Of a DNA stretch of 64,000 bases, positions 3,401 to 63,200 are shown one piece after another (the stretch's first letter is position 1; each line of letters begins with the position of its first letter). The DNA is taken from positions 58,995 to 122,994 of the forward strand of contig JAAPAO010000029.1 in the NCBI GenBank assembly GCA_013115145.1, read 5' to 3'. Position numbers and translations under genes: made by a program. The notes below the pieces were generated by a model. It saw nothing but the letters and a program-made list of their open reading frames with translations. It did not search any database and had not been told where the DNA came from. This stretch comes from Perkinsus chesapeaki ATCC PRA-425 (lineage: Eukaryota > Protista > Perkinsozoa).

Positions 3401-3930
3401 TAAATGATGAGATGCGGAGGCATAGGATGGGACAGCGCCCGCAGCTGTCTAGCACGCAGGTCTTCCCAGTTACCAGGTGAGTTGCAATCCAACTTCTAGT
3501 TGTAGTTCAATGTGCGCCGCCGGCAACAGCCAGCCGCAGTGCCACTGTGTGAAATTTCCATTCTGGGGTAAATTCCCTGTTCGTTTTTACTCACTGAGTT
3601 TGTATTCTGGAAATAGTTGAACTAGTTCCAGAATACAAACTCAGTCTAGTTCCGTAGACTCTTCCGTCATCCCTTCCTTGCGGAGGCATGGCGCAAGTTA
3701 GAAACTGAAGAAATCGAGTTCCGATTTTTATTATTGCTGATGTTTTTGCGATCAGGCCGTTCAATCTCACCGACATCCTGCCGAATCAGAATCAGTATAT
3801 CGGCAGAATCGTTCGTAAACGATTCAAGCCCCGCAAGAACAAGAAGAAGATGCAAGGACTTGACGGCCTATTGCTACCACTTGCTGGAGGCATGCTAGCT
3901 GGTGCATTGCTAGGCTCGATATTTGACTAG
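463..3930 (+). CDS. MCA: Type I metacaspase (peptidase C14) with CxxC-CxxC zinc-finger and Pro/Gln-rich prodomain; about 12 exons
   Basis: Exons read QVQCGSCHQ..ATCPHCQ, a Q/P/M-rich linker, RALLIGINYY..LSGCIPD, PGDVFFFHYSGHGSQ (catalytic His), EEDGMNETILPCD, RLTSVMDCCHSGT (catalytic Cys), VQLFSGCDD..TSAD, GGAMTTAF and QRPQLSSTQ. All are flanked by GT-AG. Stop at 3928-3930; start codon tentative. Confidence 0.93.
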
Positions 3931-17392: not shown

Positions 17393-20300
17393 ATGACCAT
17401 CGACGGCACTACTATAAAGCGGAATCCAATGAACGTGGCCTTCATGGGTCATCACCGAGCAGGCAAATCTACAGCTGCTGGCCATCTACTGTAGGTAGTT
17501 TTCTCTCTTCACTTTCGCCATACATAATCATCAGGACTCTATGTGGCGCTAAGAAGGCCGAAAAAGTTCGACAATGTCGGGATAAAGCTGAGAGAGCGAG
17601 CGTGGTGAGCACTGCTGGGAAGTCAGGCCAAATACGACGGGATGAACTTCATGCTAGAGAATCTGAATTAGAGTTCGCATTCCGAAATAGCCGAACTCGT
17701 ATTAGAACGCAAGATCATCATGGGTTACCAGCCGCAATATGCATGTGCAGTGAGCACCTAGTCGCGGACTTCTGTGCGTCTCGGTAGGAATACAGGGAAA
17801 AATCTTCGTCGCGAAATTTCCAGTGCCCCATTAGCTCCGACTTAAGCATTAGTGATTTCATACCAGCGGGCACTTTCTATCATCTTCAGCCTGATCTCCG
17901 ATATGCCTGGCTATTGGACAAACTGAAGGTCGAGCAGGAAAAGCGTATGACAGTCAATACCAATCTGGATTACTTCCAAACGAGAAAGTAGACGCATATA
18001 ACACCTGACATTAAACTAATCTTTCACAGGTACCGTTACACACTACTGGACTGTCCAGGCCACAAGGACTATCTACGCAACACTATAGTGGGAGCGTCGC
18101 AGGTGAGTAGCTTCAATCTCGACATACCGTTTCTCCGCTCGGTACTTTTGTCGGTCAAGTGCCGTGACCGACTTCAGCGACGGCTTTATAACCTCATAGG
18201 GATGTCGAATTAGCTGCGTATATTTCCGGTTACTGTCATTGTAGATTGGTATCGAGCGGACATTATTTCACATAATTTCAACTGACTTTTTTATGGCTAA
18301 CTTTTATGTGGCTTTTCTATGGCTTTTTTCTGTTGGCTAACTTTTCACAATACAAGCTTTTTCCGACTAGTAACTATTCAGGCTGACGTCTGCGTGCTTG
18401 TGGTATCAGCAGTACCAGATGAGTTCGATGAGGGTATGTCTCAGCTCGGTGAGACCAGAGAGCACGCTCTTGTGGCTTATGTATCCGGTAGGCTCACTAA
18501 GGCATTATTTCTGCTGATGGTGGCTGTAGGTGTGAGGCGAATGATAGTTGCCGTCAATAAAATGGATCGGCCTGAAGTTGCCTATTCCAAGGAACAGTTC
18601 CACCAAGTATCCACCCAGATTCAACGATACCTGCGTAAGAGCTTGCGAAGTTGTGTCTTCGTTTTACTATCCGCAATGGTAACCTTCCGAGTGATAGGGG
18701 TAATGCTTTGTTGAACGACGCTCGGTTTATAGTACTGTAGTATAATGAAAGGATTAATTTCACACTGTAAGTATGTTGTACTTGCGATTGTATAGGTGTT
18801 TTCTGGACTGTGTTTTGTAGTGAGTGCTTGATGGGTACTTGCTCTGACCTTTAGTGCTGTCAATTGGACCTGGTAAATTGTCAAAATTTTACACATAGCG
18901 CTAAAAGCTTGGGCAATTAAATGACGGTAATTTATTATTAATAAAACGGGTAAAGTTTGAAGAATATGGGCAAATTAGTAGAAATCCGGGTAAATAATCA
19001 ACTTCACCTGGAGATGCTGTGGAGTAGAGTAATTATATACATACATTTCTAGGTCTACAATGCACTTATTTACTTTACTCTTCACATACATATGAAGCTC
19101 GTGCATATTGATTAACAACAGCTAGGGTTGTTGTCCACCTGCCTCTTTGCCAGGTAATCTCGGTTTCGATGACAACCGTGTAGAGATGCTTCCCATATCG
19201 GCTCTGACAGGCTACAATATCTACAATCGAGGACCTTCTGATCCCTCCGGAGAATCACCGATGGCTTGGTGAGACGAGCAATAAACTTCCATTAAGAGTT
19301 CGTCTAGAGATTTGATTACTGCTTTACCTTGAATCTGGTAACAACACTATCCTTGCTGACGATAAAGAGCAGCCTAATGTACAACTCCCCCCAAACTGTT
19401 GTCGTTAATGGGGAAACCAGTCTTGGCAGCACCTTTGAGTTTCGCCGGCGCCAGTGGAAGACATAGTTCACGTTTCACATCGCAAGATACGCGCTCAGGT
19501 GGCGAGGAATGTGGGAAACAGCCGTAGTGTTTTTGACCGATACAAAATCGCGCTTTACACCTGACATTGTCGAGTCTGATAGGTGTTTGCATACGTGCCG
19601 GCTTTTACAATAGCCAACACAGCGCTTCTGCAGGTACAAAGGTCCTTCCTTATGGGAGCATCTGGATTTGGTATCATCACCTCATCGGAAGGAAGCAGAA
19701 GGGCCTTTCAGAATGCCTATCGCAGACATCCATCGGCTCAGCTCAGGCAGCAGCTCTGATACGTCCTTAACGGATCCAGTACAATGCTCACAGAAGACGG
19801 CTGTCATTTTAGCGGGAGAAATCACCAGTGGTAAGCACAGCGACATTTTATCGTGAATCACAGTCACGGCTCATTGGCCATCACCAGGCTTCCGATGTAT
19901 TTCGCATTCATTATAGAACTTCTTTTTAATAACTGTATGTAACTGTATGATAGAGTAGGCATTATTATGTGGTATCATTTCATGGTATATTATTATACTA
20001 TTATATAACTCTGTTGCTTTATCACTTCCTACTGCAATTGATAACTTCTATTAAGGATAAAGGGATATCAGTCCCACAAACTTGATCAATACCTTACAAT
20101 ACAAATAGTGAAAAGTATTCTTTTTTGTGAGGTTTCTATAAGCCTACTCGATGTATCTGGATAAGACTTGTTGATTGCTTACGTCATTTCGCTCCCGTAT
20201 AGGTACAGTGGAAGTCGGTGATCAAGTACGAGTCGTTCCTGGAGGGATTGAAGCTACAGTTGCCAGCATACAAGTGGGTAACTCTTTATTAGAGACTGCG

Positions 20301-45258: not shown

Positions 45259-46041
45259 TCACGCTTTCTTTTCGGCGACACCAGTGGAGGACGCAGCGTA
45301 AATGACACCGAGCTGCTCGATATATTGCAAATCTTGATAATATTGAATCATATCATCAGTAACATTTTGGGTCTCGTCAACACGGAATAGCTCCTCCCTG
45401 CTGTGAGCATAACCGCAGTTTACACGACGACAGTTACGGCCACGATCACAGAGCTTGGTCTTACAAAGATTCCCCGGCCTGACACGTAGCTCATCAGCCG
45501 AGTGTGCGAACGCGCACTTATCACCGAATGCACAGTAACCTCTAGCAAAATGTCTACAAGCTTTAGTCTTCACAAGATAAGTAGGAGGCGGCGGGGCATC
45601 TGGGTTGACGAAACTTTCCATGGCATCAACAGTATTATCACCAATAGCAGGAGACAGTGGCTTAGAGAGTGCAACGCCTTTAAAATAAGAATCAATATTT
45701 ATAGTAGGAGGGGCTGAACGTGAGCTGTACTTAGGTGACACACAGACAGCACTGTCAGCAACAGACCAGGTAGAGGACCTTAGAAGAGCCCCAGGAGGGG
45801 GATATGGCGGACCAGCTTCAAATGGAACTGATAGGCTTCTTGAGAACGATAACGGGGTACTGATACTGGCTATGGAAGACGGCGTTGCTATGGTGCTCAC
45901 CGAGCTAGCGCTCCGACGTGGTTTAGAGTTGACATAAGGATCGGTGAGAATCGGCTGAGGCCTCACGGGATTCTTAGGCGTCGGAAGGATGCCGTCATCA
46001 TCGGTAAAGGATGAAGATTGGCAGCTCTCGGACAAAGACAT
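45259..46041 (-). CDS. Tandem CCCH zinc-finger RNA-binding protein (TIS11/ZFP36-like), intronless, 260 aa
   Basis: KTKACRHFARGYCAFGDKCAFAH..ELR and KTKLCDRGRNCRRVNCGYAH..EL, with KTK lead-ins and a Ser/Pro-rich N-terminus. Confidence 0.9.
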   Translation of the reverse strand: MSLSESCQSSSFTDDDGILPTPKNPVRPQPILTDPYVNSKPRRSASSVSTIATPSSIASISTPLSFSRSLSVPFEAGPPYPPPGALLRSSTWSVADSAVCVSPKYSSRSAPPTINIDSYFKGVALSKPLSPAIGDNTVDAMESFVNPDAPPPPTYLVKTKACRHFARGYCAFGDKCAFAHSADELRVRPGNLCKTKLCDRGRNCRRVNCGYAHSREELFRVDETQNVTDDMIQYYQDLQYIEQLGVIYAASSTGVAEKKA

Positions 46042-51400: not shown

Positions 51401-52734
51401 GAGCGGCGCAGTGCGCCTGTGGTCCAAGGCGGGTCTCGGATGAATGAGTCTTGATGCACGTCAGAATACAGAATAAGCAGGGCGCATATACGGATCCAAA
51501 ATTCCCAGTCAATGGAATCCCGAAGAGTTTCCCTACATTGACATTGCGGGAATCATATGAAAGTTGATCAGTAATTCGAAGTCCAGTTGATTAGTAGTTT
51601 GACTCGACGATGCGCATAATTTAATATCCCCACGGCGTGGGACCCCCGCCAGAGTGGTCGCACTGTTTCCCAGTGTATTAACAGTTTGAGTTGGCCGGGC
51701 TATCATCAACCTACGTGAACGAGCTTTTAAGTTCGTCATAGGGAATTAATAATGGCCATGTTCCGCGAATCCCGAATATTTCGTCAAAGTTTTATGAATT
51801 CAAGCAACCCAACACTATCCTCCTTAAGTGCTAATGAGTCCTCCAAGTCCTTAATGCTCGTTATGAACTCGCTTTAATAGCCCATGGGATGGGCCTCATG
51901 CTGGGCACAGCTCAGCCTTACTGGGCAGGCCAGCGGAGCAATGCTTTGCCTACTCTGCTCTCAGATCAGGACGGTGTATGATTCACGCAATGTTAATGTA
52001 GAGAACCTCTTCATGATTCCATTGACTGGGACTTTCGGACCCGTATATGCGCCCCGCTCTTATTCTGTATGACGTTACCACGGTAGTTTTGATGTATATA
52101 GTATTAACTAACGACGTGATCAGCGGCCACGAATTTGTCGTGGCGCTGCACCACTGGTGCACTCGTCTGGGGAGCAGCCGGCTGTTGCGCCACAGCTCTG
52201 CGCCTGCTGTCTCCTACTTCCCCTTCTATTTGTTGAAGACCTCGAGATAGAGAGTTTGACTCCAATAATCTTAAAGACCGCGCTGAATCATCAGTGGTCT
52301 CGCAGCGAGACTCTCGCTTTTGTTGTTATCAACGCCAAGTCACAACGAATTGTCCCCGTGACGTGGTTCGGCCACGGTTGCATGCGTGCGAAAAATTTGT
52401 AATCTCAAGAATACGGATACACGTTCACCGGAGTCCAAGCACAACCTGACTAAAGACATTGGGGAGAGCGCTGGTCGTGCCTGCGCCTTAGCTTTGCGTG
52501 TTCCCCGCGTGAGCGCAGAGCTAGGCGGAGAAGCGACACCACCACATTTAACGTATAACCGTGTCGACGATCATCGTGGTCAACTTGTTGGGTCAGTTTA
52601 CTCGGGCCATACGACCGTATGCGGAGACAGCTCGTGTGTCCGCGCTGTGCGCGGCTAGTGAGTGCTGCAATGCGCGGTCAGAGGTGACAACGGGATAGTC
52701 ACCCCTTTTTCAGTGATTTTAAGTTTTAATCATT

Positions 52735-54140
52735 ATGGTCAACAGTCGCCCCCGTCGCAACAGCTCATCAACTTCGTCCCCGACTTCTCCTTCAGACGCC
52801 CCTGTCGACTCGAGTATAGCTACGCCCCCTGCAACCACTAGCAACGAAGCCGAGAACACTCAACCACAAGGCCAAAATCCTCCACACACAAGTGGCGAAG
52901 CCCGTGTACCTGCGCCCCCTTCGCAAGAAACCAGCGTGCCCACCCAAGACAACACCACGTTTATACTACCAGTTGCCCCCGAGAACGGCCCCCCACGCAC
53001 CCGGTCGACGCCGCAACAGCCCTGTCTGCACCACCCAATTTACCCGAAGATCTTCTCCACCTCTGTGCTGGTTTGGATCATATTGCATCCGGAACCGCCT
53101 TAGCCGCCCTATCTAACGTAGGGATCACGAATCCCGAGGCTCTAGGCTCCATCAGCAGCAACGAGACCATCAAGGATGCGCTGGCTCGTGATCTGGATCT
53201 AAAAGCGCAGGTCGTCTTCAACATCATGTGTAGCAGAGCTATTTCCGACCGAACCACCCCCAAGCCACCTCCAAGTAGCTCCGAGTCGGAGCCTCCGACG
53301 ACTCGATCAACGTCAAGACCCTACTCGAAGCTTTCTACAAGCACAACGGAATAACCCCGGCCCCATCAACAATGACTTCTAAGACCAACCTGCTTCAGAA
53401 ACTACGACGCCCAGAACAAGCCATCGCCGCCGACCTGAACGAATTCCCACCAAGACGTGACATCCCCAGCAACAAGACGGTCGAGAATACCAGAACATTT
53501 ACTCTAACCAATCAGGGACAGCTGGTGGCGCAGGAGAACAACTCGAAACGTAAGATCACCGGCTTCATCCCCGGGCTGCCTCTTCCGTTGGGGCACTTCG
53601 TGTTCTTTACTCCACCCTTCAGTAGCAGATGGTACCTTCTCCTCGACCGGTTTTTCTCTCTACGATGTGCACGTCTACTGGAGAAGGCTACTGGACTTCC
53701 TCCCAGCCCTCGGAGCACAAGGCCTCATCAACTACGATGCACAGTATCGGTGCTCTATTGCTCAATACGTCACCACGGGCACGTTCTCAATAAGCCACAT
53801 GCTGAGAGAAGACGTACTACCAGCGGTAATGAGCTCTGCCCTAGCCAAAGCCTCTGTGGAAGCTTCTCGTGACTCTGGGAAAGTCATCCAGAACCACCAC
53901 CTCAACGAGACCACTACTACTGCTGTTCAGTCCGGTTCTCGCCGTAACCCTCAAGAACCCAGGAGAACAGATCTGTGCCGACATTTTCTTCGAGGGTCCT
54001 GCCACTTCGGAGACGACTGTCGTTTCAGTCATAGCCCGCCAACATCCACTGCAAGATCAATGTCGAGTCGGGGCAGTTTCTTTAGCGATAATCGGGGACC
54101 CGCGAAGCGGCCGAGAGGTACGTCCCCTAATAAATCGTGA
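52735..54140 (+). CDS. Gag-like ORF with C-x7-C-x5-C-x3-H zinc finger; three apparent frameshifts
   Basis: Joined across frames 1, 3, 2, 3. Contains GLINYDAQYR, resembling the YD..(F/Y)R motif of DIRS-group gag, and LCRHFLRGSCHFGDDCRFSH. Confidence 0.7.
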
Positions 54141-54154
54141 AGGAGTTAATTGAA

Positions 54155-54259
54155 TCAGTCAGTCAGTCAGTTAGTCAGTCAGTTAGTCAGTCAGTCAGTG
54201 AGTCAGTTAGTAAGTCAGTGAGTTAGTCAGTTAGTTAGTCAGTTGTTAGTGAGTCAGTG
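54155..54259. repeat. Degenerate (NAGT)n tetranucleotide microsatellite between gag and RT
   Basis: About 26 units of cagt, tagt, gagt or aagt. Confidence 0.95.
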
Positions 54260-54376
54260 TATGGGTGAACATTTTATTTTAAAAGATAGTAGGTGAGTCT
54301 ATCACGCTGTTAGCGTAGTGTAAGCGTGTCTATACTGGCGACGTTAGTGTACTCTTTCCATTATCTGCATTAAAGT

Positions 54377-55828
54377 TTGATGATTAAACGAAGTTATCGA
54401 ACTAAAACATTTGTTTTGTGTTGCTCAGATGATATAAGTAACTCGCTACCTGCAACTAGCCGCCCTTATCAAGATGGCACCGGCATAACTTCAAGCCTCC
54501 CGCCCTTGAATCGTCCTTTTCAAAATGGGTCGATCGATTCTGAAGCAGTAACATTTGCCGGTTTCCTTGATGAAGTGGAGAAGAAGTTTCATCTGGAACA
54601 AATCCTAGAATCATCCATTTCGGGCACCGGAGAAATATCCGCAGAATCGATCCCCAAAGTTGAAGATTGCTTCAATCAAGCATCATTCGAGTTATTATCA
54701 TTGCTGCATGAACATTTTGGTGTAGCAACAGCTACGGCAAGAGTAGGAGGTCCACTTAGACCAGATGTTATCAGATTCCTGTCCTCTCTCTTTGACTCCA
54801 ATGCTGACCCTACACTACCGGACGACATAAACTCGGGCGTGAATCTTGGCTTCGAAGAACCACTCCAACCTTCGGGTGTCTTTCCTCCTGTGTCTCAACC
54901 TTCGACACAGCAGCATTCATATCTTTTGGCAAGTAGGGGTCCTGGTCCGAGGACAAACTATGTCAGTGCTAGAGACGCGGAAGAAGCTGTACAGAGAGTC
55001 ATAGACGAAGAGCTTAAGTTGGGAAGAGTCCGAGTTCTTACTAAAAATGAGGCTAGCGATTCGGCTCGCTATTTCTCTAAACTAGCAGCAATTCCAAAGT
55101 CTGGTTCTGCTAATTCATACAGATTAGTCGAAGATTTTAAAGAGTCTTCTGCCAATGCAAGAATTACACCAGTGGAGCACACAACTCACCCCTCACTTGA
55201 GGACATTAGGGCATTGGTGCAACGACTACTTCTAGATGAAGACGGCAACAAAAAAGATTACGTCGGGAGTATTACGGATATAAAAGGTGCTTACAGGCAT
55301 CTTCATTTACGTCCCTCATCACGGAAGTTTTGTTGCTTCTCTGTCAACGGGTGTGACTATGAGAATCTTGCAGTGCCTTTTGGGGTTTGTTCGGCAGGTT
55401 GGGCTTTCTGCCGTTTATCTAGCAAGGTCCAACGGATTGACCACGCATTAGCTGATCTGTTAATATCGCTAATGGGTGCCCGTGACTTAGCTCGTGGTTG
55501 GGTTTATATTGATGATGCAGCTTGGCTTTTTCCACGGTCAAAAGCATTTCCTTTGGCTGTTCGCCTTCTGTTGCTATTGCCTCTGATGGGTATTTCAGTA
55601 TCTTGGCCTAAGTTTCGTCTAGGTGTTCAAACGTTAAGATTCATTGGGTTCGACCTCGTTCTCTCTGGTGAGTGTCCTTTAATTCGTCTCCCTGCCGATA
55701 AACTTGGTATTGTCATAAACAGTTTGCATTCACTATTGGATCACAATCGACCTAAGATCCGTCTTGTCGATTTAGAGCCTTTAGCAGGCAGATTGAATCG
55801 TGTTTGTATGATATGCCCTTTTATCTGA
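54377..55828 (+). CDS. Reverse transcriptase of the YR retrotransposon
   Basis: FSKLAAIPKSG..YRLVEDF, TDIKGAYRHL, VPFGVCSAGWAF, GWVYIDDA (YxDD), FIGFDL and GRLN. Confidence 0.92.
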   Translation: MMIKRSYRTKTFVLCCSDDISNSLPATSRPYQDGTGITSSLPPLNRPFQNGSIDSEAVTFAGFLDEVEKKFHLEQILESSISGTGEISAESIPKVEDCFNQASFELLSLLHEHFGVATATARVGGPLRPDVIRFLSSLFDSNADPTLPDDINSGVNLGFEEPLQPSGVFPPVSQPSTQQHSYLLASRGPGPRTNYVSARDAEEAVQRVIDEELKLGRVRVLTKNEASDSARYFSKLAAIPKSGSANSYRLVEDFKESSANARITPVEHTTHPSLEDIRALVQRLLLDEDGNKKDYVGSITDIKGAYRHLHLRPSSRKFCCFSVNGCDYENLAVPFGVCSAGWAFCRLSSKVQRIDHALADLLISLMGARDLARGWVYIDDAAWLFPRSKAFPLAVRLLLLLPLMGISVSWPKFRLGVQTLRFIGFDLVLSGECPLIRLPADKLGIVINSLHSLLDHNRPKIRLVDLEPLAGRLNRVCMICPFI

Positions 55829-55844
55829 TAAATCAAATCTCAAA

Positions 55845-56450
55845 GTGGCCTTAGAATGGTGGTTACGAACGTTGGACCCAACGGGTTCTTCCTTTTTGCT
55901 CGAGTCAGCCATCCTCAAGCCCTCCTTCTCAGAATCAGTAGTCATGGTATCAGATGCATCAACTTGGGCTTTGGGTGGTTGGTTTTCTCATGGCAACTCT
56001 TCGAAGTGGTTCCAAGTTAGATTACATAATGGTGATAATATGAATGGCTGGCAACAATTACTGGAGGATCCGAATCATCCTACATGCAATGATATGGTTT
56101 TACTCGAAACATTAGCAGCTGCACTGTCACTACAGTTAGCGTTGAAAGAGTTTGGCCAGAGTGCATCTCGCCGAGTATTATTCCACCTCTATACGGATAG
56201 CACAGGAGCTATATCTTGTTTTCGCAAGTTTCGCTCTAAATCTGAAAGAGTGAATCATGTCCTCCAAGCTATTGTTAATAGTTTAGCACAAGTTTGCTAC
56301 TCGTTTGAAGTAGATTATATTCAATCATCTAATAATGTGATAGCTGATTCCATTAGTCGATTAGCAGACCCCAGTGCGATTGTTCCTGCTTCTTGGTGCC
56401 AAGTTGATGCAAGTTTGACTGAGCTGATTCCCTTCAATGCGAGTTCGTAG
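55845..56450 (+). CDS. RNase H domain of the YR retrotransposon (out of frame with RT after an apparent deletion)
   Basis: LEWWL, VSDASTWALGG, LLETLAAALSL, LYTDSTGAI and NVIADSISR give the D-E-D-D catalytic set of DIRS-type RNase HI. Confidence 0.88.
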   Translation: MALEWWLRTLDPTGSSFLLESAILKPSFSESVVMVSDASTWALGGWFSHGNSSKWFQVRLHNGDNMNGWQQLLEDPNHPTCNDMVLLETLAAALSLQLALKEFGQSASRRVLFHLYTDSTGAISCFRKFRSKSERVNHVLQAIVNSLAQVCYSFEVDYIQSSNNVIADSISRLADPSAIVPASWCQVDASLTELIPFNASS

Positions 56451-56566
56451 TTGTGTACTCTTTATCTTATTTCTACTTCTTCTGTGTTTCTTTTGTAGCG
56501 TTGCTCACTAGTAATTAATACATACTTCTCATTTTTCTTTTTTTAGGTATTAAAACAACTCCTTGT

Positions 56567-57721
56567 ATGAGTGATAAGCGAAATGAAGCACTACAGTCAA
56601 TCCAATCAAGCAGCCAACCTCAATTGGCTTCTTGGGTTTGGCATTTTATACAAGATGGGCATGCGGCTACTACGAAGAGTCAATATGACTCCATAGAAAC
56701 TTTTTATAAAAGTGTGGTCAGTTCCGCTATTGATCCATTCCCGGCATCTGGTTTATCGCTGGCACTGTTTGCATATGCAATGGTTCGAGCTGATTATAAA
56801 TTCAGCACAGTGTCGTCCTATTTATCAGCAATTGTATCAAGAAATAAGTTGTACGGTTTCTTCATGTCCCCAGCTGATACTTATCTGGTGCAGATGGCAC
56901 GCAAGTCAGCTTCAAAATTATGTAATCACTCAGTTGACCAGAAGGAACCTTTAACCCGGAACCAAGCTTTGCAACTGGGTTGCTTAGACCCACTTGGTGG
57001 TGATGTTATTATTACAGCATGCTTGACGGGCATTTTCGGTTTATTGCGCGGCGATGAGATCATTAATTTAAATTTCAGTGATCTCGAGTTTTGTACTCGC
57101 ATGGGAAGGCAAGTGGCAAAGCTGTTGGTACGAGTCTCCAAAACCGATCAAGCTGCTGTAGGCGAAGCTGTTCTAATTTCTTGTGTTAATGGTACCCCTG
57201 GTGCAGCCACTTGTCAATCTTGTTGTGCATATCATCGTCTACGGTTGATTGGCACTGTCCCTAGACCGGGAGAAGTACGGTACTTTGGTAACCATTGTTT
57301 GCTTTCAACAATGCCCGCTTGACTATAAGATATTTTTATGCGCGAGTTTCGCCATTTGCTAACGCGTCTCAACCCCCCGGTTGATGACTTGGGGATCTAT
57401 GGGCTCCACTCGCTCAGACGCACTGGTGCGACTTTGTGTTACGTTAACGCCGTTCGGGACCACACCATTAAGGAACAGGGTCGCTGGTCTAGTGACTGTG
57501 TCTACCAGTATCTTGTGGGAGCTTCCCTGGGTGATCGAGTTGAGTTGGCTGAGGCAATGATGCGGCCTCCTCATAGAGTTCTTTTGTCTTTCGTTCCCCT
57601 CTTCGGAAGGCGGCCATTTATTCTGAGTAATCTGACCCTTCTTCGTTTTGAGTTAATATCTCCAGCTTTGGGCGGTTCGGTGCTTGCTCGGCGAGCGGCC
57701 TGCTCGAGTGTCTCCTTCTGA
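56567..57721 (+). CDS. Tyrosine recombinase (phage-integrase-like), interrupted by two in-frame stops at 57320-57328
   Basis: N-terminal SAM-like segment (TVSSYLSAI), LLRGDE (Arg I), SKTDQ (Lys), HSLRRTGAT (H-x-x-R) and GRWSSDCVYQY (Trp/Tyr nucleophile). Confidence 0.9.
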
Positions 57722-58246
57722 GCGCTGGGTGTGCGCGGATTGGAGCGATGTGCCGAGCTTCCGCTGGTAGTGTGCGCCCGCGGCGCCCGGCACATTTGGG
57801 CCGTGTGACAGCTGTCGCTGTTGGCGCGCCCCCGCGCCCCACCGCTCGGGAGGAAGGGTAGAGAGTAAACTGGAACACCACCTGATACGCTCACGTGCGA
57901 CCACGTCATATGCTAGCCTGACTGACCAGTCTCCCCCACGTCATCCCGCTCGAGTGACCAGGCACTCCAGTTATCAACCAAGTCAAGATAGAACCAAGCC
58001 AATTGTTTCACTTCCAAAGGTATCCAGAGCACTGGTCGTGCCTAGGCCTTAGCTCTGCGTGTTCCCCCTGCCTGCTCCCTTGGGAGGGTGTTTTTTTCTT
58101 TTTTTCTTTTCTGTTATATATCCCATTTTTGCACAATAGAGGAGCGGTGCCTGCGACATCCTTAGATCCAAACAATCCTTCGAACCAAAGCAGGGCGACG
58201 CATGCGTGCGTGACCTTCTAAGTGTACGCACACGTAAGCAAGTTGT

Positions 58247-59632
58247 GTGAAGCATGCACTCAGCTGCTACAGCTTACAACAAATGAAGGTGTCTAGTCAC
58301 GGCATGGTGGCGAGCATTACGGCGAACTTGGTGGACCTGATGGTTGTATGTGGTGATATCGTATCCAGTAGCCCTTTGAAGTATCTTCTATATGTGGGGT
58401 TAATTTACCTCAAACATTTGTTATTGATTAGTATCGATCGGTTGAGGGTGTTCGCGGGAGCCGTATTTCTGTCCTCGAGACCAGACAGCTTGATGGGGAC
58501 TGCATTAGGAGACTGCAAAATGACGTATATCGGCGAGGAGCCGGTATCTGGTGGCTATTCTAGCTCAGTCAGGCGGGTTTATCTTGATAATGGCGACGTT
58601 GAAAACCCAGACAGTGTGATCGTAAAGACGAGCTCGAGTGCTCTTCGCGTGCGCATATTCGCATCCGGAGGTTACCAGCGCGAAGTGAACTTCTACAACC
58701 AGATATCACACACTCTTCCTATACCGATCCCGAAGATATACCACTCTAAATGGGACAAGTGGCGATGCTCCGAGATCATTATCATGGAGAATATTGCAAT
58801 GGGTTCATCGGTTGTAGATAAGGTACGGACGTCTGAAAATCCGGAAGCGGTTGCCGAAGAAGCAGTGTTGTTTGCTGCTAGAATGCATGCGAGATATTGG
58901 GGGGCGACTCCCTCTACTCTGGCGAACTCTTCCTTGGGCAGGTATACCTGGCTTAAAGGCTACGACTGCATCCAAGGCAAGAATGAGGGAATGTACAAAT
59001 TTAGTATTTTCTTCATATCGTACCTATGGGGAAGACTGAAGGCTGCCATGCCCGAAGAAAGAGGGGATATCACCTGGAACGGTATCAAGTGGAGTCGAGA
59101 ACTTGTGGAGTTCATCGATACGCTCATCGATGGCTCTACTTGGGACGCTTGTCAGGCATTTTGGAGAACCCGTGAGCATCCCTTAACCTTAGTTCATGGG
59201 GACTATCATGTTGGTAACCAGATATGGGATGAGAAGACAGACAAGCTCTACACAATTGACTGGTCTGAGGTGGCCGTGGGTGAAGGCCCCGCCGATGTAG
59301 CCCAGTCATTTCTTGACTTTCGACAAGTGTCCAATGACAGCAACTGGGAAAATGAACTTATCGGTACATATTGGATGGAGCTTGCGGAACAGGGAGTGGA
59401 TCATTTATCGTATCCTCTCTCCATGTGCCGTGAGGCTTATGTCCGCGGCGGTATTGACCGAGGAATTCAAGTCTTGATTGGTGTGGCTACTGCCAGAATG
59501 GCATATCCTGGTATTTTTAGTGTGTCGTATATTCAAGGTATGGTAGACAAAGTAACGGCCTTCGTAGCCGCGCATGAAGCGGAATACCAAAGGCCCTATA
59601 TAATTTCGACACCTTACCTCTGCCAGTGGTGA
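58247..59632 (+). CDS. Intronless APH/choline-kinase-fold phosphotransferase (ecdysteroid-kinase-like, EcKL/DUF227); true start perhaps about 58493
   Basis: GGYSSSVRRV (Gly loop), VIVKT, YQREVNFY, IIIMENI, TLVHGDYHVGN (catalytic loop) and IDWSEVAVGEGPADVA. Confidence 0.88.
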   Translation: MKHALSCYSLQQMKVSSHGMVASITANLVDLMVVCGDIVSSSPLKYLLYVGLIYLKHLLLISIDRLRVFAGAVFLSSRPDSLMGTALGDCKMTYIGEEPVSGGYSSSVRRVYLDNGDVENPDSVIVKTSSSALRVRIFASGGYQREVNFYNQISHTLPIPIPKIYHSKWDKWRCSEIIIMENIAMGSSVVDKVRTSENPEAVAEEAVLFAARMHARYWGATPSTLANSSLGRYTWLKGYDCIQGKNEGMYKFSIFFISYLWGRLKAAMPEERGDITWNGIKWSRELVEFIDTLIDGSTWDACQAFWRTREHPLTLVHGDYHVGNQIWDEKTDKLYTIDWSEVAVGEGPADVAQSFLDFRQVSNDSNWENELIGTYWMELAEQGVDHLSYPLSMCREAYVRGGIDRGIQVLIGVATARMAYPGIFSVSYIQGMVDKVTAFVAAHEAEYQRPYIISTPYLCQW

Positions 59633-60267: not shown

Positions 60268-63200
60268 TCATCGTGCATTAGTTCGTTTAAATATCTTGCT
60301 TCCTAAGGAGGATCTCTCCTGACGACTGGCGATGTCTCGAGTCCACATGTCGGCAGGAAAAGTCCTGAACCCAGCGGCATCCTTGCCGGTCTCATGCATT
60401 GGGCCATTTCCATGTTTGATGCCGCTCTTAAGCGCCGATATCTTTTTGAAGTACTCAGCTGTATTCACCATACACCCTTTTCCTCGAGCCCAGTGAACCC
60501 AGCAGGACCAGTCGCACTCGGGATCAGCAGTAAGCGTTTTGACATCTCCGAAAACCACCAACCCACGCTTCGCTCTGGTGAGCATGACATTCATCCTTCT
60601 AGGATCTCCGGTGAAGCCAATGTCGCCTTCCCGGTTCGAGCGAACAGCGCTAAATAAAACAAGTTCTTTCTCGCTGCCTTGGAACGCATCCACCGTGTTC
60701 ACACTAACACTTCTAACTTGTTCTCGAGACAGTCTGTACTCAGATTCAAGCATCTTCTCAATCTGAGATTTCTGTCCACTATATGGCACAATAACTCCGA
60801 TATCCTTCGGGTCCATCCCAGCCTCAACAGCGCACACCAGAGCGTCGACAACTGCCTTCGCTTCAGTTCTATTGCAGTAGGACGTCCCAACCCTGGCCTC
60901 CCCGCCAGTCAGGGTGTTAGTGTCGACCAAGCACACTTGTACACCCTCGGATGGCCAGAACAAGCCAGGTATCTCGGGGCGATCGCCGACGGCATCGCCA
61001 ATGCGCCCGTCGTAGAAGTTAATGTTTGAGAATTCAGCAATACTTGGATGCATTCGTCGTTGGACATCCAACATGTGCAATCTACCACCGGAGCTCAGAA
61101 GGCGCTCGAAAAGACTGATACTAAATCCGCCGTTTTGGGCAGCTGTTGAACAAACCGTTGCTGAGAGCTGTTTATGGTCCCCTGACATCAAAGGAGAGAG
61201 AAACTTTTCTAGAATCTACCAAATCAATACGATTCCATGTCGAGATATGCGTAGCGTTAGGAACATCTAGAGCCTCTGGCAACAGCTACGTTTCGAAAGC
61301 ATTTAAGTTGCAAAATCAATCGCTCCCCCACAAAACGAGATGTTTGTTATTCTTCAACATGTAATGACCGTAGACATTTTTCATTATCAAATATTTAACC
61401 ACGTGAAGAGCGACTTCTGCTTCAGCAAGGCATGATGGCTGAAACGGATCTCAGCTAGAAACATCTACGCCAGACTACTGAACGATCCCGACATATCTCG
61501 CCATAATAGAAATGGCGTCTATTATCCTTACCCAAAAGAACGCATCGCTTTGCTCCTCGAGCTAGCGGCACTAAAGTAGCGGGCTCTGTGGCTTGTGTGC
61601 ACTCATCGATGACAACCGAGTCGAAAGTGAGACCATCCAGCATTGGGTGACCACTGCCGGTGCATGTTCCTACTATAACAGAGAATCTGAACAAGGCAAG
61701 AAACAGATAGGGAGAATTACGTCCGCCAAAACTTGCCATTGCTCATCTGTTCATCGGAGATCAAAGAGTGTGCTCTATATAATTGAGCTATAGTAAATCA
61801 CACAATTCCTGTCTACTGAACAATTGTAGCACCATCGTATTACTAGCTTTCTTTACTTCACTCATTCTCTTTACTGCCCTATCTCACCAACTATGAGCCC
61901 AATCTATAACTGTTGTGTAACAACAACTACGACTAAGCTATCCAGAACGGGATACTGCAAGTACTCTACACATTAGCAATTCTGCACAAGGATAGATTCT
62001 TACAACATTCTGGAACATCCAGTGAATTCTGCCGAACTATCACTCCCGCCGGAAAGAGAGACACTCGGAGTCGATTTGAATCCATTGTTCCACGCTTTCT
62101 TTCTCTCGCCCCTCCCACCTATTGACCGCTATCTTGTCCATTTGTGCTCTTAACGTTGGCAAGCGTCGGAGGTGACCCAACTCCACAGCTTTCTTGTACT
62201 CTTTAATGAGCGGATGACCTGATTTTGAAGAGCACTGATTATAATGCGACTTTTTTGCTAATTTTTTCATCACTCGCCTGAAAGGGTCATTTCAGAAAAT
62301 ATCCTATAGTCAACTTACTCCAAACAATCATTTTCAAGGAAAAAATTCCTAGGGAATTAGATAATTTTTCAGCAGTCTGTCCCCCTGAAGGGCTTTCCTC
62401 CGATAGACATCCTTCCATTCCCAGCGCATGGCCTATATACCTCTGAGGTAGTGCTCAACCGTTTCGGAGAGATCAAATCCTTGGGACTCCGTCATTCGCC
62501 CAACTCGGTAGCATTCCACCCCATTCCTCTCAAGATGTCCTCTTATATTGTCTGCTGCTGCATTCGAATCAGCGACCACCAATATGCGACCTGGAATGGA
62601 CATGACATGCTCATCAACTACCTGCTCAGTGAATGCCAGTACGCCAGTATATCTAACGATATTAGGCTCGGCACAATTGATAATAACAAATATAAATTCA
62701 AGTAATACTAATTCCCAATTAGACAACTGAGCATTAGCGAGCAATCTATAATAGGTAATACTAGTCCGCATCAATTATGTTGTTCGGCTAATACAAATTA
62801 AAAACACCTTCCGGACTATCCATATTCACCTGATAGTAAATACTGCTACGATTGCTATATCATTCCAAACCGGCTCAGCGGGTGCGAGAAGGCCTCTTTT
62901 TGTGGTTCACATACTCCGGTTTCACCCCTAACGAGACTACCGCGAAAATGTCTTCTCTGTTTGGGAGCTCTCGCAGAGATCTTTCCTATTCGCCCCACTC
63001 ACCTTCATTCTTCTGCAGGGCCCCTTTCTGCTTCAATGGTCTGATCTTATTCCTTACCCAGTGCTTCACTATAGCCACCGCAGTGTAGGTCTTACCAGTT
63101 CCTGGTGGCCCTTGGATCAATGTTAAAGGGACGTTCCATGACCCGTTTATCTATAAATAATAATAACTATTAGATATTTTAAAAACAATCGTCCTATTCA

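Follow-up and report, generated by a model that had tools for sequence, protein, structure and literature searches.

How does a retrotransposon obtain both Gag and its polymerase from one transcript when the reading frames for the two do not overlap? The question is raised by a locus of Perkinsus chesapeaki ATCC PRA-425, a relative of the oyster parasite, in a stretch of 64,000 nucleotides (nt) of contig JAAPAO010000029.1 (positions 58,995 to 122,994, forward strand; hereafter the window, with coordinates counted from its first letter). The open reading frame (ORF) map and the sequence place here, in order on the + strand, a gag with a CCCH zinc finger, a reverse transcriptase (RT), an RNase H-like region and a tyrosine recombinase. 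Judged by this order, the element is an Ngaro-like tyrosine-recombinase retrotransposon, of which the window holds a dead copy.

Overlapping frames, frameshifting or readthrough usually set the ratio of Gag to Pol in retroelements, from which introns are moreover expected to disappear, since spliced RNA can be copied back into DNA. An earlier interpretation of this DNA, made from its letters alone (hereafter the sequence-only reading), had nevertheless proposed that two spacers in the element, one between gag and RT and one between RNase H and recombinase, are spliceosomal introns whose removal yields a Gag-Pol-recombinase polyprotein. Here we compare the locus with its relatives in Perkinsus. 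We consider it likely that gag and pol of this family are split by a genuine spliceosomal intron, such that unspliced RNA would give Gag and spliced RNA Gag-Pol.

A probable intron between gag and RT

The P. chesapeaki genome (41.7 Mb) holds at least 76 matches to the RT and at least 59 to the recombinase, and merging of the fetched loci gave 20 elements, partial or complete. Three frames that do not overlap, for gag, RT-RNase H and recombinase, are seen in at least 15 family members, which are 25-45% identical in amino acids. These relatives' loci sit on short contigs that lack the element ends.

In the window copy, gag ends with ...AAG CGG CCG AGA G^GTACGT (a caret marks the splice site), with the G of the donor GT at 54118, and the acceptor, ttgttttgtgttgctcag^, ends at 54428; both sites are in phase 1, and the gag stop, TGA at 54138-54140, lies between them. 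The sequence-only reading had given this 311-nt spacer the same ends and phases, with the gag stop inside, and had derived from it the in-frame junction KRPR-DDISNSL. All of this was confirmed, and the same junction is found in the public gene model P0001. The GC content of the spacer is 0.38, against 0.55 and 0.44 in its flanks, and each frame contains 8-13 stops.

Nine P. chesapeaki copies, the window copy included, share this arrangement. Their donors have the form N^GT(A or G)..., are all in phase 1 and lie 0-7 codons ahead of the gag stop: G^GTACGT, G^GTAAAG, A^GTGAGT, G^GTAAGC, A^GTAAAT, G^GTAGGG, G^GTAAGT, G^GTAATT and G^GTAAGT. Often the gag stop is part of the donor itself (GTGAGTAA, GTAAATAA, GTAAGTAA, GTAATTAA). 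The residues that the donors encode vary (G or S, followed by T, K, E, R or N), hence the conserved feature is a DNA motif, not a peptide. Acceptors in the same copies are phase-1 YAG trinucleotides (CAG in eight, TAG in one) just before the conserved [YF]QDG[ST]G start of RT. The spacers measure 61, 123, 134, 142, 153, 192, 251, 270 and 311 nt and span all three length classes modulo 3, and the frame is restored in 9/9. They carry stops in all three frames and have a GC content below both flanks. A tenth copy, C157, has a GTGAGA that overlaps the stop, with donor and acceptor both in phase 2, and public model P0045 uses the identical pair.

Enrichment of the donor motif was measured against coding sequence of the same elements as background. 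Within the last nine gag codons, 5/15 copies have a strict GTRAG (p ~2e-4), and a looser donor motif is found at the gag tail of 11/15 (p ~1e-3). Downstream of the acceptor, the first 40 codons of RT, a stretch that extends to the conserved block or close to it, contain no in-frame ATG in six of the nine copies. Since these RT frames lack an ATG, translation of pol would need fusion.

The site is not confined to P. chesapeaki. A P. olseni copy has AAG G^GTGAGT...ccctcag^ATACAGGG, in phase 1, at the site homologous to that of copy C3152b; the two introns are 49% identical and the exons 59-65%. The sequence-only reading had suggested aligning other copies, and this alignment indeed shows the splice sites and phase of intron 1 to be kept while the spacer interiors have diverged. 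In a P. marinus-like Logan contig, L063 (SRR12548988), a (TCAG)n run at L063:1-30 is followed by cttgtcag^TC TCG...YQDGSG. The run lies about 75 nt upstream of the RT acceptor, a layout of microsatellite plus acceptor as in the window.

A continuous frame through gag and pol, which the sequence-only reading had named as evidence to the contrary, was not detected in the P. chesapeaki genome: the open frames that hold gag matches reach at most 474 amino acids (aa), and those that hold RT matches at most 849 aa. The host itself is intron-rich, with GT-AG introns of 39-1622 bp that are mostly short (PMC3101222). The window also holds an EF-1alpha-like gene (17880-19300) of many short exons, with GT-AG introns of 41, 278 and ~490 nt. 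Comparison across the family and across Perkinsus species thus strongly supports the gag-RT spacer as a genuine intron.

Public gene models

The annotated model of the window locus, P0001, is FOL47_005185, a hypothetical protein of P. chesapeaki of 690 aa. It contains ...GPAKRPR^DDISNSLPATSRPYQDGTG, so that its junction KRPR^DDISNSL matches the predicted intron 1 exactly. Public models for C201, C157 and C29 also join gag to pol at the predicted sites, and model P0002 has its join at the homologous position in the P. olseni copy. Intact family members with public models include C201 (FOL47_000870) and C220 (FOL47_000903). All of these are predictions only, and the spliced versions are already in the databases as unnamed hypothetical proteins.

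P0001 has a second 'intron' of 75 nt at 53549-53623, and the codons that it cuts out (CLFRWGTSCSLLHPSVADGTF) have counterparts in the aligned gag of three relatives. We rejected it as an annotation artefact that bridges a frameshift. Many 'C3H1-type domain-containing' hypothetical proteins in Perkinsus annotations are these elements, and some of their predicted introns only bridge frameshifts.

Proposed expression of gag and pol

Under the reading that we prefer, full-length unspliced RNA would be translated to Gag, ending at a stop 0-7 codons into the intron, and would presumably double as the template for reverse transcription. In the spliced fraction two phase-1 ends would meet, and gag would read on in frame into the ATG-less RT/RNase H, giving Gag-Pol. 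The ratio of Gag to Pol would then be set by the efficiency of splicing rather than by frameshifting or readthrough. This division between unspliced and spliced RNA had been put forward by the sequence-only reading, and among the possibilities weighed below we judge it the best. The absence of processed copies suggests that unspliced RNA is selected as the replication template. The recombinase would form a third cistron, with a conserved acceptor upstream and its own ATG in many members, and might be expressed via a second cis-intron, via the gag donor or via a spliced leader.

The window copy

The features of the window copy are as follows.

52465..52506, + strand: left 42-nt direct repeat, 90% identical to 58026-58067 at a spacing of 5561 nt
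53010..54117, + strand: gag-like region, ending at the intron-1 donor; the gag ORFs of C201, C318 and C3152b align
53976..54032, + strand: CCCH zinc finger of Gag, C-x8-C-x5-C-x3-H (PF00642, E 1.5e-8)
54118..54428, + strand: intron 1 (gag-pol), predicted from family comparison and public model P0001; 311 nt, GTACGT...GCTCAG, phase 1 at both ends
54151..54255, + strand: (CAGT/TAGT)n microsatellite within intron 1
54429..55825, + strand: RT exon (RVT_1); homology to relatives starts at the first codon
55821..55845, + strand: RT/RNase H lesion, a deletion of ~24 codons plus a frameshift, from alignment to the relatives' pol
55845..56447, + strand: RNase H-like C-terminal part of pol, 37-41% identical to the RNase H part of relatives
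56443..56546, + strand: spacer 2, 104 nt, with a weak GTTCGT donor and a strong pyrimidine-tract acceptor ...tttttag^GT, from comparison with relatives
56567..57718, + strand: tyrosine recombinase with its own ATG at 56567, from alignment motifs; broken by two stops
58026..58067, + strand: right 42-nt direct repeat, paired with 52465-52506

The repeat at 52465-52506 probably marks the left terminus of the element. Apart from the 42-nt pair, no terminal repeats of the window element were found, and an Rfam scan of the window returned nothing.

The identities of the zinc finger, the RT and the recombinase were confirmed. Every relative has the CCCH finger in its gag, and the public models contain it too. 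RVT_1 is matched weakly by the window copy, at E 3.6e-4 and under the curated Pfam cut-off, and clearly by family member P0009, at E 1.4e-10 and over that cut-off. No Pfam RNase H match at E 0.1 or better was obtained for the window region, and UniRef names one member of a P. olseni cluster 'RNase H type-1 domain-containing'. The recombinase shows the signature R...K...HxxR...W...Y, with the alignment motifs LLRxDE, SKTD, HSLRRTG, GRW and a C-terminal Y; its family profile matches Cre (1pvp) at E 0.0036 as well as other recombinases, and Pfam Phage_integrase is matched by the recombinases of 3/6 relatives (best E 1.8e-5). Frame sizes in the family are ~300-440 aa for gag, 681-812 aa for RT-RNase H (uninterrupted in 12 copies) and 330-490 aa for the recombinase where complete, and the spacers between frames measure 0-260 nt, a single one reaching 673 nt. 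A methyltransferase domain was detected neither in the window nor in the family, where the pol frame stops just after the RNase H-like block.

A separate observation concerns copy C2927 (L018/L054), a distant family member, in which nothing but one in-frame TAG (element coordinates 3475-3477) stands between the frames of RT-RNase H and recombinase. In some lineages pol and recombinase may therefore be, or have been, one continuous frame.

Each coding region of the window copy is damaged. Its gag homology is spread across three reading frames: the gag ORFs of C201, C318 and C3152b align to 53010-53252 and 53577-54134 in differing frames, and since the frames differ among the aligned parts the gag region must have decayed. 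The RT open frame runs from 54377 to 55828, with its stop at 55826-55828; the alignment of C3152b pol begins at 54428, and the window RT shares 39-44% identity with relatives in which the RT-RNase H ORF is intact. When aligned to these intact relatives, window pol keeps a single frame as far as 55822 and resumes in a different one at 55821, with about 24 residues absent between. Residues 53-511 of C201 pol accordingly align in one window frame and residues 536-733 in another, and the RNase H-like open frame (55845-56450) differs in reading frame from RT. An intron at this change of frame was considered and rejected, because relatives have a single uninterrupted RT-RNase H frame of 718-751 aa, of which the window lacks ~24 codons.

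The recombinase is open at 56567-57322 and 57338-57721. Its nonsense codons, TGA at 57320-57322 and TAA at 57326-57328, stand at residues conserved in relatives (...ITY(E/D)...). A 54-nt mini-intron around them (57277-57330) was rejected, since the alignment shows homologous coding sequence here, interrupted by two stops of the point type.

By these alignments the window copy is a pseudo-element that is unable to make the polyprotein, and it has kept the signals of intron 1. Given its degeneration, excising both spacers still gives no single open frame. The spliced Gag-Pol-recombinase polyprotein that the sequence-only reading had drawn from this copy fails on the breaks in the gag frame, the deletion and frameshift in RT/RNase H and the two stops in the recombinase.

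Expression of the recombinase

Spacer 2 of the window reads GCGA^GTTCGT, with the G of its GT at 56443, and tttttctttttttag^, ending at 56546; its length of 104 nt and its two phase-1 sites are as the sequence-only reading had stated. Its two ends fare differently in the comparison.

A phase-1 YAG^GT acceptor is present in 5/5 members of the window's subfamily (window, C1191, C895, C201 and C260). In all five it lies 26-56 nt upstream of the conserved KR/RR motif of the recombinase and is open to that motif. This acceptor looks real from its conservation. Donor candidates at the RNase H end are GTTCGT in the window, GTTGAT in C1191, GTGATG in C201 and GTATTC in C260. The donor end, by contrast, seems not to be genuine: the candidates are weak and stand at differing distances from the conserved LPxxW tail, and no pattern is seen in other subfamilies. 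An ATG 1-3 residues before the conserved RR/KR motif is found in 7/17 aligned members, the window included. In C3259 and C308 a stop codon directly precedes this ATG, so that fusion is impossible there. The two closest relatives, C1191 and C895, lack such an ATG, as do C241, C2885 and C220, so that joining or a non-AUG start would be needed in these copies.

A cis-intron between RNase H and recombinase is therefore not supported as stated. Of the claim that both spacers are introns, the gag-RT half stands, on nine copies and P. olseni; the RNase H-recombinase half is not established, its donor being weak and not conserved and the recombinase having its own ATGs in several members, although its acceptor is conserved. 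Three ways of expressing the recombinase may be weighed.

The acceptor could be a spliced-leader trans-splice site that releases a separate recombinase mRNA with its own ATG, which we regard as unlikely but worth entertaining; that the RT acceptor serves likewise is less likely still. Perkinsus trans-splices with spliced leaders of 21-22 nt (PMC3101222, PMC9399869). In the window a strong pyrimidine tract and AG stand 19 nt upstream of the recombinase ATG, and the recurrence of the ATG at the same position in 7/17 members, two of them with a stop just before it, would suit a free-standing mRNA. However, the five copies named above offer no ATG after the acceptor, and trans-splicing does not require that the acceptor be in phase 1 and open to the conserved block, as it is in 5/5. 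A relic of a spliced leader was not found in the window DNA or at any fetched locus. As to the RT acceptor, the six of nine RT frames that have no ATG in their first 40 codons speak against an mRNA of its own.

Alternatively, both spacers could be cis-introns, with active members making a single Gag-RT-RNase H-recombinase polyprotein. The phase-1 GT near the RNase H stop, combined with the phase-1 YAG^GT acceptor in the window, C1191, C201 and C260, is consistent with this, as are the five copies without an ATG before the recombinase N-terminus (C1191, C895, C241, C2885 and C220), which would need fusion. Public model P0003 unites all three parts in 1385 aa, and P0015 would be long enough for all three (1451 aa). 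Yet P0003 takes a further donor, ATCA^GTAGGA, which would delete the LPxxW tail conserved in RNase H. Donors near the RNase H stop are weak, different from one another and at non-homologous positions, with none consistent in other subfamilies, and about half of random tails would hold a phase-1 GT. Taken with the ATG of the recombinase in 7/17 members, and with the stop that precedes it in C3259 and C308, this leaves a single polyprotein unlikely.

One donor might also serve two acceptors, the gag donor being spliced either to the RT acceptor, for Gag-Pol, or to the recombinase acceptor, for a Gag-recombinase protein. Such a scheme is reminiscent of retroviruses, with their single major 5' splice site, and needs no donor at the RNase H end, and so it accounts for a strong conserved acceptor alongside poor RNase H-end donors. 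The window, C201, C241, C2885 and C220 share phase 1 at the gag donor and at the acceptors of both RT and recombinase, and with the GT that follows the recombinase acceptor a gag ...G^ donor would rebuild a GGT codon. However, chance alone would bring the phases together in one of three copies, and these copies are related to one another; C3259 and C308, with a stop directly before the recombinase ATG, cannot use the route. The scheme is purely inferential, and we know of no precedent for a Gag-recombinase fusion. We hold it to be quite unlikely. More doubtful again is a retrovirus-style programme that combines one gag donor and two acceptors with intron palindromes (described below) marking unspliced RNA as the only template, which would explain the absence of intron-less copies.

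Weighing the proposed gag-pol intron

Several points weigh against the intron-1 reading. Protein searches found no transcript-derived protein spanning the gag-RT junction: a word search with the junction region of P0001 returned only P0001 itself, and a search of representative proteins returned Perkinsus gene models and distant metagenome proteins only. A search for RNA sequencing runs for 52700-57900 listed none. As P0001 holds a spurious intron, agreement with the gene models is not independent proof. No obvious donor is present at the gag tail of 5/15 copies. The acceptors were chosen with the phase known, and as each copy offers about three candidate YAGs, one in phase is to be expected in ~70%, so that phase matching alone is weak evidence (~0.04 over nine copies); the copies are moreover related, and their counts not independent. 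Finally, the window (54380) and C201 have an in-frame ATG upstream of the RT acceptor, which would permit separate translation of pol. One metagenome match, P0089, was set aside, as at 23% identity and without gag homology it is uninformative on the intron.

Frameshifting or readthrough is ruled out by spacers of 61-311 nt with stops in all frames. Splicing might also be absent altogether: each frame would be translated on its own, through internal initiation, reinitiation or a non-AUG start, and predictors would have exploited GT/AG pairs that match by chance. This would suit the empty search for RNA runs, the intron invented by a gene predictor at 53549-53623 and the copies in which a clear donor is wanting, but it is improbable in view of the enrichment of donors at the gag tail, of phase 1 being kept in nine copies and P. 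olseni, and of RT frames that have no ATG.

Palindromes and neighbouring features

Perfect palindromes of 15-17 nt with a single central base are about ten times denser in intron 1, spacer 2 and the termini of these elements than in coding parts, and may offer a lead on the selection of the replication template. Examples are GCCGATAA-G-TTATCGGC, TCACCCGA-G-TCGGGTGA and CTATAGTT-G-AACTATAG, and several occur as overlapping pairs. Their loci include L005 (the C3152b intron, element coordinates 1340-1356), L061:4586-4600 and other family loci. The palindrome CCGATAAGTTATCGG is common to the P. olseni and C3152b introns, which are otherwise diverged.

Just upstream of the element, at 51466-52070, lies an inverted repeat whose 82-nt arms (51476-51557 and 51977-52058) are 88% complementary and 419 nt apart; it could be a foldback or an insertion resembling a miniature inverted-repeat transposable element. 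Further away, an ORF of 260 aa at 45259-46041 on the - strand has a CCCH zinc finger (Pfam E 1e-7) and may be the gag of another such retrotransposon or an exon of a host CCCH protein. On the right the element is flanked by two host genes. That at 58247-59632 (+ strand), the ORF of which starts ~180 nt past the right repeat, encodes an APH/EcKL-type phosphotransferase (Pfam E 1.3e-11), and that at 60268-61191 (- strand) has an AAA_12 helicase-type domain (E 1.1e-52).

Comparison with known systems

The Perkinsus family resembles Ngaro elements, the layout of which is described in PMC8547959 and PMC13465315, in the order gag, RT/RNase H, tyrosine recombinase, in having no methyltransferase, in direct rather than inverted end repeats and in a recombinase with HxxR and a catalytic Tyr. 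It differs in that its frames are parted by spacers of 25-310 nt, that the gag-pol spacer has conserved splice signals and that Gag has a CCCH finger. Of the split direct repeats of Ngaro, A1-[ORFs]-B1A2B2, the window shows one 42-nt pair only, and no B1/B2 pair was detected in it.

With DIRS1-like elements such as Dictyostelium DIRS-1 and PAT the family has in common that they are tyrosine-recombinase retrotransposons, and P. marinus has been listed as a host of such elements, from a GenBank entry only (PMC3266345). In DIRS1-like elements the frames overlap, and a methyltransferase, inverted terminal repeats and an internal complementary region are present (PMC3266345). Of these traits, a bracketing inverted repeat and an internal complementary region were not seen in the window, nor a methyltransferase or an overlap of frames in the Perkinsus family.

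The searchable literature on DIRS and Ngaro elements yielded no mention of introns in them. The closest functional precedent lies elsewhere. Steinbauerova et al. reportedly showed in 2008 that the legume Ty3/gypsy element Ogre has an intron between gag-pro and pol, partial splicing of which gives Gag-Pol while unspliced RNA gives Gag. Ogre is also discussed in PMC1142308 and PMC3735527. Like the Perkinsus family as read here, it is a retroelement that retains a spliceosomal intron between gag and pol. Ogre, however, is an integrase-bearing plant long terminal repeat element in which splicing was shown experimentally, whereas the Perkinsus family is a tyrosine-recombinase element of an alveolate in which splicing is deduced from sequence.

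If the reading is true, Perkinsus would provide a second independent case, after plant Ogre, of Gag-Pol controlled by splicing, present in at least two and probably three Perkinsus species, and the first such case in the DIRS/Ngaro order as far as our literature search reached. It would also raise the question of how unspliced RNA gets chosen as the replication template. Splicing in copia and BARE elements (for BARE, PMC3735527) and the subgenomic splicing of retroviruses are alike in balancing structural against enzymatic products from one transcript. In those systems splicing removes pol, for extra Gag or for an Env mRNA, whereas the Perkinsus family would need splicing in order to make Pol.

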